A DNA stretch of 64,000 nt, from positions 6,996,448 through 7,060,447 of the forward strand of contig BDGG01000002.1 of the NCBI GenBank assembly GCA_001949185.1, in the 5' to 3' direction. Shown piece by piece: positions 30,939 through 54,811 of this stretch; position 1 is the first letter of the stretch, and each line of letters begins with the position of its first letter. The translations under genes were made by a program, and so were the position numbers. The notes beneath the pieces were generated by a model. It did not search any database. It was not told the DNA's origin and was given only the letters and a program-made list of their open reading frames with translations. Source of the DNA: Ramazzottius varieornatus. Its lineage: Eukaryota; Animalia; Tardigrada.

Positions 30939-33903
30939 ATGCAGAGGAATATGCAAAGGTATTTCGACAGAGCCAAGGAGTGGTACGTGGACAATGTCCA
31001 AGCCAGTAATATCCAGCATGATTCGGAGAAGGTGGAGTTTATGCATGCGGGAGACTACGGTCATGAGGATTACGACAACTATGGCGAGCAACCTAACACT
31101 TTCGCGAACTATCAGACATATGACGAAAATGGGGAGCAGATGCCGAATGGATTTAGCAATCAAAATGGAAGTTATGGGACTTATGGTCACGTTGGTGAAT
31201 ATGAAGAGTTTTCCGAAGGTGTGGCATCCAAGCACCACATTTCGGAATGGCAGGCTGGGTGGAACGTTACCAACGCCATTCAGGTACGCGACGTATATAT
31301 CTCGTGCGAAAGTATGCTCTGGTCAGTGGATATTTTGGCAAAGTGAAAATGAGTTGGAAGAGGGTTTCGGTTATGAGATATGGGAAAGGTCGCGGGTTGA
31401 AAGCTGGTTTCTAATTTCAGCCAAATTAAAACGGTGTACGTCTTGGAGCCCATTTGTATCCAAGACATGCTCAGATGCAATCACGCACGGGAATAATCAG
31501 ATTCTAACAGCAAACAGATCGCTGTAAAAGGCAATTCAAAATCGAGCGCAAAGGCGTTTGCGCTGAACGCACTTAGAAAGCAGATGGTCCTTTACCATGA
31601 TTGCCCCAAGCACGCCTTACATGGACGAACACAGGCATGCAGACCATTAAGGAACACGGTTTGCTAAAACTTCCACACTGCAGGCGCCCGATATATCTCT
31701 TCGTATCCGTTTTCGAAGCCTGATCGGTTTTTCGGAAAGTTTTTAAATTAGATTGATACATCGCGGTCACTTCGTCTTACGGTATCGACCTTCTGAGAAG
31801 CGTGATTATCTCAGAACCTATTTACCGAAGGAAACATCAGACGGACCATGTCAGCACAGGCGAAATGTATCCGTCTGATGATGCAGTGGTCTTTATTCTG
31901 TCAACGCTAATAAGGCAATATATAAGCGTTTCAGGTTTTACACTGCTTGTTTGCTGCGCAAGCAGCTTTGCACACAGCTGGATCTAAGCAAGTAAACTTC
32001 TCCAAACACCGCTTTTTTCCTCCCGGTTCTTCTGTTCACACAAAACGCTAAACGACAGTAGCGTAGCGCAAAAAGCAGGTTCACAGCCACTTTGAGGAGC
32101 TCTTCGAAAACGCCCACAGCCATAGCGTCAATCTGCGCATATGGGAAATCTCAAGAGCCACGCCCACTTCTAAACAACCATGGCGCTCAAATAAGAATCC
32201 TTTTCGAAACTTCGCTGTGAAACAAACTGTTTTTACCGTTGGTAAAACTAACTACCGCAGAAGAAAGCAACTTCATAACTTTTATAAAATTACAAGTTGG
32301 ATACTGAATGTAGCACCGTAAAAACTTCTCGCCCGGTTTCCTGATTTTGTAATATTTCAAAATATTCGCACTAAATTGGCTGTATTTTCAGGGTATGTTT
32401 GTGGTCAGTTTCCCATATACCGTTCTCAAAGGAGGCTATTGGGCCATCATATCAATGGTCTTTTTTGCGTACATTTGTTGCCACACCGGGAAAATATTAG
32501 TGGAATGTCTCTACGAGCCCAACCTAGATGGTATACCTGTTCGAGTTCGTGGGTCCTACATGGACATTGCCACCGCTGTCTGGGGTCCTCGGTGGGGTGG
32601 CTGGTTAGTAACTGCTGCCCAGCTGATCGAGCTGCTGATGACGTGCATCCTCTACACGGTTCTTTGTGGTGACCTTATGGAGGGAAGCTTTCCAGACGCC
32701 GCCATCGGTGCGAACGGCTGGATGACCATTGCTTGCATCATCCTGCTATCTTGTGCTTTTCTCCGGAATTTGCAGTCCGTTTCTTTTCTCAGCTTCTGGT
32801 GTACCGTAGCTCACTTCTTCATCAATGCCATCATCCTCGGCTATTGTCTCCTGCAAATCAAAAACTGGCATTGGAGCGCGGCAAAATTTGAAATCGATAT
32901 TTACTCGTTTCCCATCGCTTTGGGCGTGGTCGTTTTCAGGTACGCCACTCCCAACAAGATATGAAAAATGTATCAGTTTCGTTCTGATTTTACAGTTTAT
33001 TTTGATTCAATATTTTAGATAGATGGGAGACCCAAACGAAACGTACGATTGTTATCTTGAATGACGCACGTTTCGAGCAAATAATAATCAAAACGTTCGC
33101 CACTTGACGTATCGATCTTGAACGTTTCGTTTGCCGACCTCCCAGGTAGGTTAACTGATAAGTTTACGTCTGTTAGATTTGTAAATTCGTACTGCGCACT
33201 AATTCTTGATGTATTTTCCAGCTATACTTCCCAAATATTCCTCCCAACACTGGAAGGTTCCATGGCGAAGCCCGATCGTTTCAACACCATGTTAAACTGG
33301 TCACACATTGCCGCTGCAATCTTCAAAGCTCTCTTTGCTTACGTGGGCTTCCTGACTTGGGGCTACGAAACACAAGAAGAAATAACCAATAATCTGCCCA
33401 CGCAAGGTTTTAAAGCTACGGTCAATATTATTTTGGTGATCAAGGCTCTGCTGAGCTACCCGTTGCCCTTCTTCGCGGCGGCCGACACGTTGGAGCATGC
33501 GCTGTTCCGCAACAAGCCCGAGACGCCATTTCCGTCTTTTCGCAACCCGGACGGCTCACATAAGCCTTGGGGCATCGTCATGAAGATGGGCTTGGTTTTC
33601 TCAACACTAATCATGTCCATCGTCATCCCGCATTTCACCACGCTAATGGGACTTATTGGCAACTTTACGGGGACCATGCTGAGCTTCATATGGCCTTGCT
33701 ATTTTCACATGAGACTGAAATGGGATACCCTGGAATGGTGGATCATCTCCCTTAACGTTTTCATCATTTGTCTCGGCTTCATCATTGGCAGTGTTGGGAT
33801 ATATTATTCTACGTGGGAACTGATTCGGGCGTTCCAAGGGGAAGACGTCCACAAGGTTCTACCGATCCTGGCAGCCAACATCACCCACCTGCACAAGTTC
33901 TGA
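30939..33903 (+). CDS. SLC32A1: Vesicular inhibitory amino acid (GABA) transporter, VGAT/unc-47
   Basis: Exons 30939-31283, 32392-32939, 33222-33903. Diagnostic '[24 protein letters not shown]', 'AQLIELLMTCILY', 'FSYTSQIFLPTLEG', 'KALLSYPLPFFAA', 'GNFTGTMLSFIWP'. Confidence 0.95.
33024..33144. mobile_element. Palindromic dispersed repeat, copy in VGAT intron 2
   Basis: tgggagacccaaacgaaacg...tgacgcacgttt...aaacgttcgccacttg...cgatct...cgtttcgtttgccgacctccca. Confidence 0.7.
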
Positions 33904-37269: not shown

Positions 37270-37641
37270 CCAGTGTTGTTTTAGTATGACTTTTCGAGTT
37301 TAACTTCTACTTACTGTTAATTAAAACTCCCCAAAACTGCCAACTTCTAATTACTAATTACTCCCGGCGCCAAACTTAAGAAGTGAAACTTTTGCTTGAT
37401 TAGAAGTCCGCGGTTTCCCGAATTAAATTTAAATTTACATTTTCGAAAATTTTAGTTCATGCAAACGGCTGATCTCTGGCCGACATCGTTCCACATAGTC
37501 TGCATGCAGCAAACCATGCAAAGCTCTGAGACGAACCTTTAAACAGAAGGCAAAAACATCAGCATAGAAATTCCAAGCAACAAATCGATAACATCTTGTA
37601 CGACACATTGCAGAATTTGCGTACTGTAGCTATATTGTGCT

Positions 37642-37670
37642 ATACTGTACTGTACTGTACTGTACTGTAC
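37642..37670. repeat. (TGTAC)n pentanucleotide repeat
   Basis: About 5 units read directly. Confidence 0.85.
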
Positions 37671-38278
37671 ATTCAGGTGCGAATTTAGACTGGGGAACCG
37701 TAAATTTAAATTAGCATAAAAAAAGTCGGAAAAGCCGGTTTCGAGGTAGTTCTACTTCTAATTTTACTAATTAAAACAATATTGCTCAATACGCCCTTGG
37801 TCGGAAGACAGTAAAAAGTTGAAGCTGCAGTCCAAGAAGTGGAAGAACGAGAAGCTACCGGTTCTCTGGGCTCCCGAAACTTGCTGTAAGGAATACAGAG
37901 GGTGTTCTAGCCAGTAACGAATGTAGAAACGTAGTATCCGCCTTCTTGTCACCAAACTTGATCATAAAATGTGGCTGTAAATAGTACGAATGCGGCAAGT
38001 CAACATTCAGGTGCGAATTTAGCATATCTCTTGTTGTATTGGAAAGGGCACTACAAAGCCAAATGGACCGTGGTCAAAGTGAAGTGGTGCCCGGACGGTG
38101 GACCCCCTGTACGTAGGGTTGTGAAGTGGCGAACCAACAAAGGATTCAAATATACGGCACATTGATGGCCATGCTTCGGTATCGCTTTTCCTCTGATCAC
38201 TTGACGAGCGCTTCCGATACCACACAAGCTCAAGGTTCATGTATTTTTGTGTCTTAAATTTTTTGGGTGCACTGAGGA

Positions 38279-38961
38279 ATGATTATCATGCACCGGACGT
38301 ATGGGAATGCCGGTTGGAATTTTAACTCGCTGCGTCTTCTGTCGATTCTAATGATTCCTGGCGTGCAAGGTATAATAATTATTAAGGGTGGAGTCCGTGT
38401 TATTCTGCCTCAATTTCATTTTCTGGTTATTCTTGGTATCTTTCAGCTTTGGAATGCTTCTCATGTGTTAGTCAAGAAGATAATAATGAGAAATGCATCT
38501 CGACCATCCAGCTTTGCGATCCCGAAATCCATGATGCTTGCAGTACCAACATTCGATGGGGAGGTACAGTATGGAAATTGCCCCAGAAAACTCGGCCCAA
38601 AAAAAAGACTGATGGGACTTCCTTTACAGTTCCTTTCTTTTGGGTGCCGGCCATCAAGAGGATGCATTATATCAGCAAATCTTGTGACAACATGAGGAGC
38701 TGTCAAACGAGGAAGCGGCAATTGGAAGACCGCTGTTATCGAGACTGGTGGGCTGATTGGCAGTGCGAAGATTGCTGCAGTGGCGACCGGTGTAATCATT
38801 ACGTCGTGGTAGGTAATCCATGGCTTCTGGTCTTTCATCTTAATTCCAGCTAATCGTTTCTCTAGTTGGCTTCGGTGAGATCTGGCCTCGATTGTTGGCT
38901 TCTCCTTATCTGTATCATCCTCCCCCTCACAAAGCAATTGCGACTCTCCAGGACGATCTAG
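38279..38961 (+). CDS. cold: Ly6 three-finger GPI protein, coiled-like (septate junction protein family)
   Basis: Exons ~38279-38369, 38447-38563, 38629-38808, 38866-38961. 'LECFSC...NNEKCISTIQLC...CSTNIRWG...HYISKSC...RDWWADWQCEDCCSGDRCNHYVV' follows the Drosophila Coiled pattern as recalled. Confidence 0.8.
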
Positions 38962-39467
38962 AACGCTACAGGGATGTCAGTCGATACCTCTTTTTCTTCG
39001 ATCTCTACCGTCTACACTATATACCTGGTTGCAGTTCTCGTTGCTTTGACAGAGTCCCCTCGTATTCGGGTTAGTGTTATCTGAGTGGTTTTGTTACGTA
39101 ATGTGGCACGTTTCCAGCGAGCCGTATAAACTTTTCTTGGGAGATTGCCAAAAACCCACTTTGCCGATAGACAAAGCGCAGGCTCTTCGCTGAACAAACG
39201 TTAGAAGACGAGTAGACCTTGAAGTCGCAAACGGCGAAGTGTATTTGCGTGTCGTAAGATTTTTCTACGGCAGAAGTGCACTTGACTTGCAGATAGGCTT
39301 ATCATCTCGTCGAGATACAGTTTGGTTCAGCGTGAAACTTCATTCGAGTTGCGCGAAAGAAGTGACACGTGCCTGGATTCGAACACACACGACGTGTTAG
39401 TTGTCCTGCTCCATCTGGAATACTGTATTTGGGATTCTACAGTCTCGAAGTCGGGATCCCTCCCAAC

Positions 39468-41229
39468 ATGTCAAGCCAGCAGAAAGCGCCCTCTGTCGCT
39501 TATGAAAAGCCTATTCAGCTAATCCGCGCGAACTTACCAGAAATCGGGAAGCGTGTCCGCGTTCCCTCCTACGATCCCGTGCCTCCTGGCTGCAACACCA
39601 TCGTCCACCTCAGCGTCGGTGGTTTCCATCGGGCTCATCAAGCGGTATACCTGGACGACCTTCTAGAAGCCGGAAAGACGGAGAGATGGCACTTGATTGG
39701 TGTGGGTCTTCTTCCCTTCGACATACCAGCGCGCGACGCCATGCAAGCCCAAGACTGTCTGTACACAATGGTGGAGCGTGATGCGAAAGGGGACAATGCG
39801 CGAATCATCTCTTCGATCGCCGAGTATTACTATGCGCCGGAAAAGACCCAGGAAGTCTTGTCGGCTATGATGAGCTCGACCTGCAAGATTGTCTCGATGA
39901 CCATTACCGAAGGAGGCTACTTCATCCATCAAGGGACGCATGAGTTCCACGAGGCACATCCCGATATCCAGCATGATTTGGCCAACCCTACGACGCCAAG
40001 ATCGTCGTTCGGATATATCCTGGAAGCCTTGAAACGAAGAAAAGCAGCTGGTGTTTCTCCTTTCACCATTCTGTCCTGCGATAACATGCAATGTAATGGA
40101 GACGTTACGAAAAAGATGATCACCGCTTTCGCGCATCTCGCGGATCCCGAATTGGCTACGTGGTAAGTCGTACACTTAATCCTCGAAAATATACATATGT
40201 CCATGTATTGGCCCACCAGCAGCAAGGCTCGTCAGAGGCCTACATATACCACACCGTCGCCAAATTTCGTTGGACATGGTATGCAGGTTTGTGTCGTCGG
40301 AAGCAGCAAGTAACCGCACACGGACAATGCCTAAGGAGGACTTTATGTTTGTACCGAGGTACCTGACGCAAATGTCTGCTTATTTCAGGCTGGAGAAACA
40401 TGGCGCTTTCCCGAACTGCATGGTAGATCGGATCACTCCCGCCACGACCGATGCGCACCGAGAGCTGGTAGAGAAAGAATTCGGCATCCTGGACAAATGG
40501 CCAGTCACTTGCGAGACATTCCGACAATGGGTCGTGGAGGACCATTTCCCCCTGGGAAGGCCCGCGTGGGAGACCGTCGGGACCCAAATGACTCCTGACG
40601 TCCTTCCGTATGAACTCATGAAGATCCGGCTACTGAACGCTAGCCATCAAGCTTTGTGCTACATCGGTATGCTCCTTGGTTACCGCTACGTTCCAGAAGC
40701 AATGGCGGACGCGAATATCACCAGGCTGTTGCGCCGCATGATGGACGAGGAAGTCAGTCCGCACTTACTTCCGGTTCCTGGTGTGAACCTTGAAGACTAC
40801 AAGAACACCTTGATTGAACGATTTGCTAATCCGGCTGTGAAAGATCAACTGCTAAGGATTGGTACGGAAGGGTCAGCCAGGATCCCAAAGTTTGTCTTGC
40901 CGTGTGTCAGGGATGCTTTGAAGGCGGACACCCCGGTCAAGTTCTTGTGCTTCACTATCGCTTCCTGGATCTACTACCTCGGACAACAGAACGACGAAAC
41001 ACACGAACCTCTTGGTTTCAACGACCCAATGCTAAGTGTTATTCAGCAGGCTGCAGTGCAGGGAGGAAACAGTGCGACGGCTTTGCTGAGTATCAAAGAG
41101 ATTTTCGGTACGGACCTGCTGGAAGACCCGAGAGTCTTTGGACAGGTCGACCAAATTTTGAAGTCCTTCTATGCTGTGGGCCCGAGAGCTACGTTGGCAA
41201 CCTATGTGCAACAAGGACACCGATGTTGA
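39468..41229 (+). CDS. Long-chain mannitol 2-dehydrogenase family protein (MtlK/UxuB type), 511 aa, probable horizontal acquisition
   Basis: Exons 39468-40162 and 40389-41229 (TG|gtaagt...tttcag|G). Motifs 'IVHLSVGGFHRAHQAVY', 'IVSMTITEGGY', 'PFTILSCDN', 'FPNCMVDRITP', 'WPVTCETFRQWVVED', 'PYELMKIRLLNASH', 'LIERFANPAVKDQLLRI'. Confidence 0.95.
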
Positions 41230-41396
41230 TAAATTCGTTGCTTCAAACACTGTTAATACACTGAACATAACACGCGCACTGGATATTTATTCGACGAGCG
41301 CAATACGGTGTGATGTAAACGAGATGAAATCCATGATTTTAGAACAGTAACTTCCAGCAAATTGGACACTAATTTTTTACAATGGAAGAAAAAGAA

Positions 41397-44171
41397 CTAG
41401 CTTCTGGTAGTCCCAGGGTTTCTAGACGGTACCCGCGGAGGCGGTACTGGCACGGGGGGTCGACGTGTGGTGGTATCTGGCCGCCCGACTATTCTTGTCA
41501 TAGGAAGAGCAACGCCTGGGCGTCTTGAGACAGTCCGAGAAGAGGAAGACGAGGAAGTCGAAGACGTTCTAGATGTACTTGATCGTGCGCTGAAGGGCCA
41601 TTGGCAGCACGGCGTCATGCTATAGAAGCCGGAAGTCCCACGTTTGATTAGGAAGGCAACCAGTAAAATCAAGGCTGCCGTCCCGAAACAAGAAGCTGGA
41701 ACGAAAACGCACATTATGAATGGTTTTTCGCTATATTTCCCCCAATTTTTCTTGCCTACCAATGATAGCGAAGAGCTTTGCAGTATCGACAGCTTCTTCC
41801 GGCTGCATAACGGCGGATAGCTCCGTGTGGTCATACGGCAGGGCTTCAACGTCAGCCACATTCCATATCCCCTGGTTAGGAGCGGTCGCACTAGGAAAGA
41901 CGGGCAGGAAGTCCGCGGGTAACGTGTGCTCCATCCGTCGCCTGAATAACCCTGTTGTCTTCGACGTCGATTGAGTTGAACCCATTGTAGAACTCTTGGT
42001 CGAATTAGTTGTAGATGTTACAGTTGTAGATGGCATCGTGGTAATATTACCAGGGACAGAAGTAGCTGTGGTTGTTTCGGTGGTACTCATGGTACTTCTC
42101 GGTGCGGCGTAAATGGGAAACAAACGTTCACCGTCCGGTGCCAAAATCCATTCATTTTTCGCTTCAACGCCGCTCTTACCTGTAATGGTAAAAGAACTAA
42201 CTGTGTGCCGTTCTACTGTGGACCTGATTCTGCATGGAAGTGCTGACTACGAACCTTGGGTCCTGGTTGAAAGTTCGTATTCTGACTGATGGAAAGACAA
42301 GCGACGATCTGGCAGCACTGGGGAGGTGTTAGGTCGAAGCTGAGTTCCTCGGTAGACCAAAGGATAGCTGCCTTGATGGAGCTGCACTGGTATGAGGCCG
42401 TTCTTCTGTTGGGGAGAGCCTTGTTTGTTGACGTACGGCCCATCACGGTAAAACGGGTAAGCTGTTGTCCAGATTTCTGGCGAATGCATCAAGCTCGGCA
42501 ATTCTATAAGCACAGGAAGCACCATCCGATAAACTGAAACTTTTCTTTCACAGGTTGGAATCATGATTATGAAGAATTATTCGCTTACCAGCTTCCCGTT
42601 CTAGATAAAAGTCATCCAGCGCAATATAGCCGTCACCAGGGGGCGCTCTAGTATTGATGGCCCCTTCGAAAATCAACTGTGAAAAGAGAGATTACGATAT
42701 GGAATGGTGGTTACGATCATATTTCGTAAGTTGGCGTATATAGCCCAAGATGATGGCAATATGTCAGTCACATTACCTGGAAGCTTCCTGCTTGAAGGTT
42801 GACGTGTCCTTCAGTCCAGTCAAACGACTGATGACCTGTTTTTTCCCATATAATTTGATCTGCACGTGCCAACACCTTCTTGAAGAGCGTCAGGCGACCC
42901 ACCGCGTTGCCTCGCATGTGATACCAGAAGCGCAGAGTAACATCAACAGGAGTTTCCACTCGAGGTCCAATCAACCTTGCTAACGCTTGAGCTGGACCAA
43001 AATATGGATGTTGATGCGGAGGAACGCCAGCTGCACCAGGTAGCCCCGGCACACTTCCGGTCCCGGGTGCACCCATCAGGTCATAGGGTTTTACGTCCGA
43101 ATTGGTATCCATGCCGGGCGGCTTCATTCCAGCAACACGAACCGGGTTGGGATATGCGCCAGGGTACTACAGTCAGAAAATATGAGATACGTGGATAAGG
43201 TTTCAAGAGATCGTGAACGTGTGAAGACTCTTACCCTGTTCAGTGGATTTTCAGTGGGGTATTGTGGATACGAAGGGTAGCTGGGTGCCTGATGGCTGTT
43301 ATAGTGGGAGTTGTAGCCACCAATCTGCCCGCCATAGTATGAGCTGACTTGAGAGGCAGCGATAAGTGGGGCTGCAACAGGCGATTTGGAGAGCGGAAGT
43401 GAGGTTGTCGGGGTGTACGACTGGGTCAAAACAGGCTGAAGAGGTTGCCGCAAAGGTTGCCGCAAAGGTCCGATGGACGGATGATGCATCAGCCTAGACG
43501 CGATACCCATCTGAGCCGCCAGAAGCTCGTCAGGCTCCGGAGGATCATAGTTATCCAGGGCGTCCGGGTCCATTATGGGGCGTCGGTAGTCTGCGCCATC
43601 CAGAAACAGGTAGAAGCCGACTACAAATGAACATTATTGGTAAAGGCTGCACCAGTGCATCTTTGACAGCCCAAAATACAGGCTGCAATGATAAGGACAA
43701 AAGCTTTATCGGGAAACTTACAGGCGTCTTTGCCGGGCGTGTGATCTCCTGCAACCTTGTAATGTCCCGTTCCGCCAGGTCCGCGATGGCGTTTCCAGTC
43801 AATCTGGTCAGCTGGAGATGTTTCTTGCGTCCATCCACATAAGCTCCTGAATTCAAGCGTATAACGGCATACCATCCAATTTGCGAGGCAGCGAAAGGGC
43901 AATCTTTTTCCCTACCAATAAATATTATTACTAATAGCTCACCATTCAAAATCGCAGGTTGTGGATAATCCCATAGTATCGACATTATAACGTGACGGAC
44001 TCCGGCCGGCATTCTGGGATGAGACTTCCTTGAGCAAAGTATCCAAAAGAATTCCTACAAGAGACCAATTATTGACGACGGCCTTATCTCCAAAAAGTAC
44101 AATGCCAACAGAAAGTACAAACCTAATAATGCAGTGATGGGCAAAGTTACGAAGATGGCTTCCATTTGCAT
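41397..44171 (-). CDS. Single-pass membrane protein with a MAM domain and a Thr-rich mucin-like stalk
   Basis: MAM motifs 'LCGWTQ...DQIDWKRHRG...DHT', 'GFYLFLD', 'ARLIGP', 'LRFWYHMRG', 'WEKTGHQSFDW', 'LIFEG', 'YIALDDFYL'; TM 'LFAIIASCFGTAALILLVAFLI'; Ser/Arg/Pro-rich tail. The 5' exons are tentative. Confidence 0.8.

Positions 44172-44793: not shown

Positions 44794-54811
<10,018 letters not shown>

Follow-up and report, generated by a model that had tools for sequence, protein, structure and literature searches.

Two mannitol 2-dehydrogenases (M2DHs) of solved structure, that of P. fluorescens (PfM2DH; 1LJ8/1M2W) and 7RK4/7RK5, are the described enzymes with which the gene considered here is best compared. 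The division of labor among the catalytic residues of PfM2DH has been worked out: Lys295 is the catalytic acid/base, Asn191 and Asn300 form the oxyanion hole, and Glu292 acts as a proton gate (PMC3307286).

A still closer counterpart lies in another tardigrade. In S4 Data of Yoshida et al. 2017 (PLoS Biol, PMC5531438), the Hypsibius dujardini (exemplaris) gene bHd13020.2 is listed as a case of horizontal gene transfer (HGT), with a best nonmetazoan match (A0A031GEF3_9BURK) of 536.6 bits, a best metazoan match (W2TKX4_NECAM) of 307.4 bits, and an HGT index of 229.2. It is marked there “Phylogeny_and_expression_and_perdurance,” with the tree class “prokaryotes” and the flag “hiexp,” and it is given the domains Mannitol_DH_N and Mannitol_DH_C, the orthogroup OG0008444, and a Ramazzottius varieornatus homolog, RvY_05740.1 (PMC5531438). 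In the RAxML tree of S5 Data, bHd13020.2 adjoins Haliangium, three Oxalobacteraceae entries (Janthinobacterium among them), and one unclassified Moduliflexus-like bacterium (PMC5531438). The gene appears in that work in supplementary tables only—its structure, catalytic residues, and function are not discussed—and our literature search found no paper in which RvY_05740 is named or a mannitol dehydrogenase of tardigrades is treated in the text.

In this paper, we have tried to follow one R. varieornatus gene through a single stretch of DNA of 64,000 nucleotides, which we call the window. The gene is almost certainly RvY_05740, because no second locus of the family exists in the genome; it is thus already known from the published HGT catalog of 2017, and we do not offer it as a new discovery. 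What we find here agrees with the published pair bHd13020.2/RvY_05740.1 in family, domains, and bacterial neighbors, and that pair was recorded as a high-likelihood transfer from prokaryotes, expressed and common to both tardigrades. The two differ in gene structure, with seven predicted introns in the Hypsibius model and one in the window gene.

Gene Structure, Splicing, and Linkage

The genome that we searched (G000) comprises 55,842,812 bases in 200 contigs, with the window at ~7.0 Mb on contig C2 and the gene ~7.03 Mb into that contig. A profile search of the whole assembly found the family's two Pfam domains, PF01232 and PF08125, at this one locus only, making the gene single-copy. Its parts and its neighbors are collected in Table 1.

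Table 1. Features of the dehydrogenase gene and its surroundings, in window positions
Feature	Position	Strand	Details
VGAT-like Aa_trans transporter	32395-33903		flanking animal-type gene
Small spliced gene upstream	38183..38966	+	introns of 77, 66, and 57 nt; GT..AG joints in X4, X5, and X8
Minimum 5' UTR	39173..39467	+	from the start of a 2006-nt contig, run X4
Exon 1 CDS	39468..40162	+	231 codons + 2 nt; ATG at 39468
Spliceosomal intron	40163..40388	+	226 nt, GT-AG, phase 2
Exon 2 CDS	40389..41229	+	TGA stop at 41227-41229
3' UTR	41230..41480	+	contig ends at 41404 (X4) and 41480 (X5); overlaps 3' end of convergent MAM gene
MAM-domain gene, 3' exons, convergent downstream	41180..43166	-	introns of 64, 75, 85, and 100 nt; CT..AC joints in X5 and X8
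Type IV collagen C4 domain	45103-45624	-	flanking animal-type gene

Joined, the two exons make a coding sequence of 1536 nt and a protein of 511 aa. The initial annotation had described an open reading frame of just this length, with polyol dehydrogenase motifs and a 226-nt GT-AG intron, and its figures were reproduced exactly from the sequence and the list of open reading frames. The translation holds the motifs VGGFHRAH, TITEGGY, SCDN, MVDRITP, and MKIRLLNASH. Exon 1 encodes the greater part of the Rossmann NAD-binding domain, preceded by an N-terminal extension; VGGFHRAH and SCDN (which carries the oxyanion-hole residue Asn206) fall within this exon. Exon 2 encodes the end of the Rossmann domain (VDRITP, with Asp245) and a helical C-terminal domain with Lys310, Asn315, and His318. 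The donor site reads TGG/GTAAGT and the acceptor site TTATTTCAG/G; splicing rebuilds ...ELATW/LEKHGAFPN..., which is colinear with intron-less bacterial proteins (...LAQWLGEHCSFPN...), and the conserved ...W/L... of those homologs is regained at the exon junction.

The intron matches nothing but itself in the genome, with no second copy found elsewhere, and on that ground we rejected the idea that it is a repeat or the remnant of a transposon. It is two to four times as long as the eight introns of the two adjoining genes (57-100 nt).

Contigs from several sequencing runs were aligned over positions 37600-43400 of the window. The 40162/40389 junction, which had at first been drawn from the genomic letters, is found exactly spliced (226 nt skipped, GT..AG) in contigs of runs X4, X5, and X8, which represent three studies; these runs are classed as RNA-like by guess, a guess supported by the absence of the intron from their contigs, and the intron is retained in the DNA run X1. 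Two contigs are nearly full length for the dehydrogenase (39173-41404 and 38600-41480), and the X5 contig, which extends 5' to 38600, may be merged with the gene upstream. A 13.9-kb DNA contig of X1 is colinear with the window over 37741-43400 with zero differences, though it is not independent evidence if the assembly was made from X1, as may be the case. The strain behind X5, which is ~1% divergent, carries the gene between the same flanking sequences on both sides (38600-41480). Over 38183-43318, run X5 also departs from the assembly by an insertion of 23 nt after 41270, within the 3' UTR of the dehydrogenase, and by the loss of 2 nt at 39056.

Could the gene be a bacterial contaminant or the product of a chimeric assembly? 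The family is typically microbial, and the assembly itself may have been built from the DNA run that covers the locus; both points would suit such an origin. A contaminant, however, would hardly have a GT-AG intron that is removed in transcripts of three studies, a 3' UTR that overlaps the transcript of the MAM-domain gene, a host-like base composition (see below), a place 7 Mb inside a scaffold, or the same flanks in a divergent strain. Because the intron is spliced out in RNA-like contigs, the flanks are colinear, X5 shows the same context, and the neighbors are of animal type, we give contamination and chimerism next to no credence. The argument made from the sequence at the outset, that the intron and the tight linkage oppose contamination, has thus been borne out by the RNA splice and by a colinear DNA contig over both flanks.

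The gene also looks at home in its composition and in its pattern of change. GC at third codon positions (GC3) is 0.605 in the dehydrogenase coding sequence, and the adjacent VGAT-like and collagen IV C4 exons have 0.59-0.61. Between the window and X5, there are 11 coding differences, of which 9 are synonymous and the other 2 are conservative (I16V and R498K); set against 13 differences in 1119 noncoding bases of the same X5 contig, this pattern indicates purifying selection.

Family Membership and Catalytic Residues

The two exons were scored separately against profiles and databases. Exon 1 matches Pfam Mannitol_dh (PF01232) at 6.9e-30 and 105 bits (cut-off 27), and exon 2 matches the tail of the same profile (positions 148-198; 6.7e-14, 52.8 bits) as well as almost all of Mannitol_dh_C (PF08125; positions 1-188 of a 190-position profile), at 4.2e-52 and 176.9 bits (cut-off 30.7). 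With both Pfam domains and the catalytic Lys/Asn residues in place, the protein belongs to the long-chain polyol-specific dehydrogenase/reductase family. The top PDB matches for both exons are the two solved M2DHs, 7RK4 (9.4e-60 for exon 1 and 3.9e-71 for exon 2) and the P. fluorescens enzyme (1LJ8; 1.8e-50 and 1.1e-67). At E values from 1e-50 to 4e-71 per exon, the tardigrade protein and these enzymes would have the two-domain long-chain fold in common.

The catalytic Lys295 of PfM2DH and its two oxyanion-hole residues, Asn191 and Asn300, align with tardigrade Lys310, Asn206, and Asn315 at a constant offset of +15, and the gate residue Glu292 is kept as Glu307. The active-site residues Asp230 and His303, as well as Arg373, all three of which we take to have substrate-binding roles in the PfM2DH structure, are likewise conserved. 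The tardigrade protein differs from PfM2DH in an N-terminal extension of ~15 residues, in a short C-terminal extension (...QQGHRC), in Leu at the place of Glu293, and in Arg at the place of Lys381 (an exchange also found in the bacterial sister clade). A further difference is that its gene carries an intron.

Because every catalytic residue of PfM2DH is kept, interconversion of mannitol and fructose is the predicted reaction: the enzyme would catalyze, reversibly, D-mannitol + NAD+ <-> D-fructose + NADH. It is from sequence that we infer activity, substrate, and cofactor, and it is similarity, with the two solved M2DHs as best PDB matches, that suggests EC 1.1.1.67.

Sequence is a poor guide to substrate specificity in this family, and the same fold might serve mainly for another substrate, be it D-arabinitol, D-sorbitol, or D-fructuronate/D-mannonate. 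NCBIfam, indeed, ranks D-arabinitol 4-dehydrogenase (NF043014) and fructuronate reductase (NF011611) as the nearest models for both exons, and sorbitol dehydrogenase 5ITG and YdfI 4IM7 are lower-scoring but clear PDB matches. Against this, with the exons scored apart, NF043014 reaches 111.2 + 194.5 bits (a sum of ~306 for a cut-off of 600) and NF011611 reaches 141.3 + 189.7 bits (~331 for a cut-off of 603), so that both fall below threshold, at only about half of the cut-offs, and the solved M2DHs 7RK4 and 1LJ8 remain the best matches on both exons. We regard another main substrate as unlikely, and we keep mannitol and fructose as the predicted pair.

A reading of cofactor preference from the position of PfM2DH Glu68/Asp69 was dropped as not diagnostic: the Asp is kept here, but it is also kept in 5ITG, a Gluconobacter sorbitol dehydrogenase, and the G. 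oxydans enzyme is reported to be NADP-preferring. As to location, the product is probably a soluble protein of the cytosol, because its N-terminus is hydrophilic, with no signal peptide, and its C-terminus is not SKL-like.

Bacterial Relatives

For a word-seeded search of 5.8 billion proteins, the query was exon 2 within its 319-aa open reading frame, which brought 500-aa relatives into range. The 120 matches listed are 56-63% identical to it and all bacterial or metagenomic in look; every named match among them is bacterial (Verrucomicrobiota, Janthinobacterium, Competibacteraceae, and Chthoniobacterales). Among GTDB species genomes, the matches were Janthinobacterium at 61-62%, Competibacteraceae at 59-60%, Massilia at 59%, and Verrucomicrobiota at 57-58%, followed by Abditibacterium and Moduliflexus at 55-56% and by cyanobacteria and actinobacteria at 46-54%. 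The closest relatives found are thus proteins of Janthinobacterium/Massilia, Candidatus Competibacteraceae, and Verrucomicrobiota (55-63% over exon 2 and ~53-56% over exon 1). They are colinear with the tardigrade protein across the intron site, and their genes are intron-less. Their names come from automatic annotation only, and we found no biochemical characterization of these nearest homologs.

Trees were built on exon 2 only (272 columns), with no named fungal sequence and with one named eukaryote, P0142. In a quick tree of 101 rows, window exon 2 falls inside a bacterial clade of 28 rows (SH-aLRT 99), and in a careful tree of 39 rows, the corresponding clade of 27 rows has support of 95/93; homology search and phylogeny, which the initial annotation had named as the way to check its claim of a foreign gene, therefore place the tardigrade gene within bacteria. 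The stem of the tardigrade lineage is long, at 0.63 substitutions per site in the 39-row tree. The AU test did not reject a tree in which 23 inner-clade bacterial rows are grouped without the tardigrade-like rows (p = 0.51), and because the position inside the clade is not fixed by this test, the donor can be named just as a bacterium of or near the clade.

Another explanation for the gene would be vertical inheritance from an early eukaryote, followed by loss in most animals. A few “metazoan” database entries do exist (Necator, Lasius, Acyrthosiphon, Rhodnius, and Amphimedon) in the S5 Data tree, but they sit there in long-branched groups away from the tardigrade gene (PMC5531438); scattered as they are, they could be either contaminants or independent transfers. 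Vertical descent also fits poorly with a tardigrade gene that lies within one bacterial subclade at ~60% identity. The M2DH structure 7RK4, which we take to be fungal, scores far lower on exon 2 (243 bits vs. ~368 for the best bacteria). We judge vertical descent to be highly improbable and return to a bacterial source.

The relatives with eukaryote-like features deserve a closer look. P0225, from an exhaustive representative search, is a fragment of 101 aa that is 86% identical to the tardigrade C-terminus, and it has in common with the window protein a one-residue insertion and a ...YVQQG(H/Q)RC tail, both of which are missing in bacteria. P0072 is a full-length protein of 490 aa from a 1.8-kb JGI contig; a scan of JGI metagenomes with P0072 as query gave a best match of 65% and did not bring back that contig. 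P0267, from the same search as P0225, is a product of 166 aa encoded on a 46.8-kb ENA contig. Over its middle 126 residues, it is 91% identical to P0072, and on either side the similarity breaks off sharply, as expected for an exon read into introns; it has the look of a single 126-aa exon from an intron-bearing homolog. In the careful 39-row tree, the window protein and P0225 are together sister to P0072 and P0267 at 94/93, with both branches long. Such a grouping would fit one old transfer common to several intron-bearing lineages, and P0267 and P0072 may come from another tardigrade lineage.

In a profile search that started from the tardigrade-like pieces, there was no named protein of a tardigrade, a fungus, or another animal among the matches, and the same was true of a search with the Dermamoeba homolog as query. 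That homolog, P0142 (EukProt, from the transcriptome of the amoebozoan Dermamoeba algensis), is a family member with a poly-Ser insert, and its nearest relatives are unnamed metagenomic proteins. It may be either a further eukaryotic acquisition or a contamination.

Origin and Physiology

Horizontal-transfer claims in tardigrades have had a troubled history. The initial annotation had proposed a domesticated foreign gene, and here the linkage to animal genes, the RNA-verified intron, the host-like GC3, the differences between strains, the nesting in a bacterial clade, and the published Hypsibius analysis all agree in support of one. Taken as a whole, then, we hold with good confidence that a bacterial mannitol 2-dehydrogenase became, by horizontal transfer, a tardigrade nuclear gene, kept under purifying selection, whose product would now serve as an NAD-linked mannitol/fructose enzyme. 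The gene acquired would have been a bacterial long-chain (PSLDR-type) mannitol 2-dehydrogenase, and its donor would have been related to the Oxalobacteraceae/Competibacteraceae/Verrucomicrobiota clade of soil and freshwater bacteria. After the transfer, it would have gained a spliceosomal intron, UTRs, and a host-like codon composition and would have been held under purifying selection since. With RNA splicing, linkage, composition, selection, and phylogeny in hand at one place, the locus could serve as a clean positive control for tardigrade HGT, and the interest that remains is in its physiology.

What might such an enzyme do for the animal? At first sight, it had been read as part of a “polyol pathway,” and this part of the initial reading does not hold: there is one enzyme only. 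No second locus in the genome carries PF01232 or PF08125, which leaves no mannitol-1-phosphate route, and with no other component of a mannitol cycle at hand, the gene connects mannitol to the hexose metabolism of the host in a single step. As such, it would be the sole entry point for mannitol into the metabolism of R. varieornatus. Mannitol is abundant in fungi, in lichens, and in many algae. Dietary mannitol could be oxidized by the enzyme to fructose, which host hexokinase or fructokinase would then pass on to glycolysis, with no further foreign gene needed. Because bacterial enzymes of this class act in oxidation, we lean, slightly, toward oxidation of dietary mannitol over synthesis.

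The reaction could also run the other way, with fructose reduced to mannitol as a compatible solute, a hydroxyl-radical scavenger, or a sink for NADH in desiccation, freezing, or hypoxia. The PfM2DH reaction is reversible (PMC3307286), the gene has been retained and is expressed in an anhydrobiotic animal, and the Hypsibius ortholog bears the mark “hiexp” (PMC5531438). However, our literature search found no report of mannitol in tardigrades, and the gene was not accompanied by a dedicated fructose-supplying or mannitol-1-phosphate step; a weak further point is that neither gene identifier occurs in any other supplementary file of Yoshida et al. 2017 among the first 200 of 273. On balance, we think a reductive role rather unlikely, and a link to desiccation is speculation.

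Hypsibioid tardigrades are known to accumulate little or no trehalose. It is tempting, and to our minds decidedly doubtful, to go one step further and suppose that they make mannitol of their own from fructose, as an overlooked small-molecule protectant or redox sink that aids anhydrobiosis and radiotolerance; if this were true, mannitol would have to be counted among the osmolytes, glass formers, hydroxyl-radical scavengers, or redox sinks of tardigrades. Whether the role is nutritional, which we favor a little, or protective is directly testable, because R. varieornatus is open to germline knockout by DIPA-CRISPR (PMC11175437).

Neighboring Genes

The small gene upstream had been called a Ly6 gene. 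It is indeed a spliced gene, and it has the CCxxDxCN cysteine motif typical of Ly6/uPAR proteins, but Pfam gives no match for it and does not recognize Ly6/uPAR; the gene itself stands, and its label is one taken from the motif.

The convergent gene downstream had been said to stop ~170 bp away and to encode a MAM domain, and both statements were right: the match to MAM (PF00629, 3.2e-10, on the minus-strand exon 42777-43166) is real, and the last coding open reading frame of the gene stops at 41397, 168 nt past the stop of the dehydrogenase. The 3' ends of the two genes, dehydrogenase (+) and MAM (-), overlap over 41180-41480, and the terminal MAM exon (41180-41695, in an X8 contig) reaches into the dehydrogenase coding sequence. 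Farther along, the type IV collagen gene (-) lies within 45103-52000, with triple-helix repeats at 46469-46999, and the region of 46-52 kb has a raised GC content of 0.54-0.55 vs. ~0.47.
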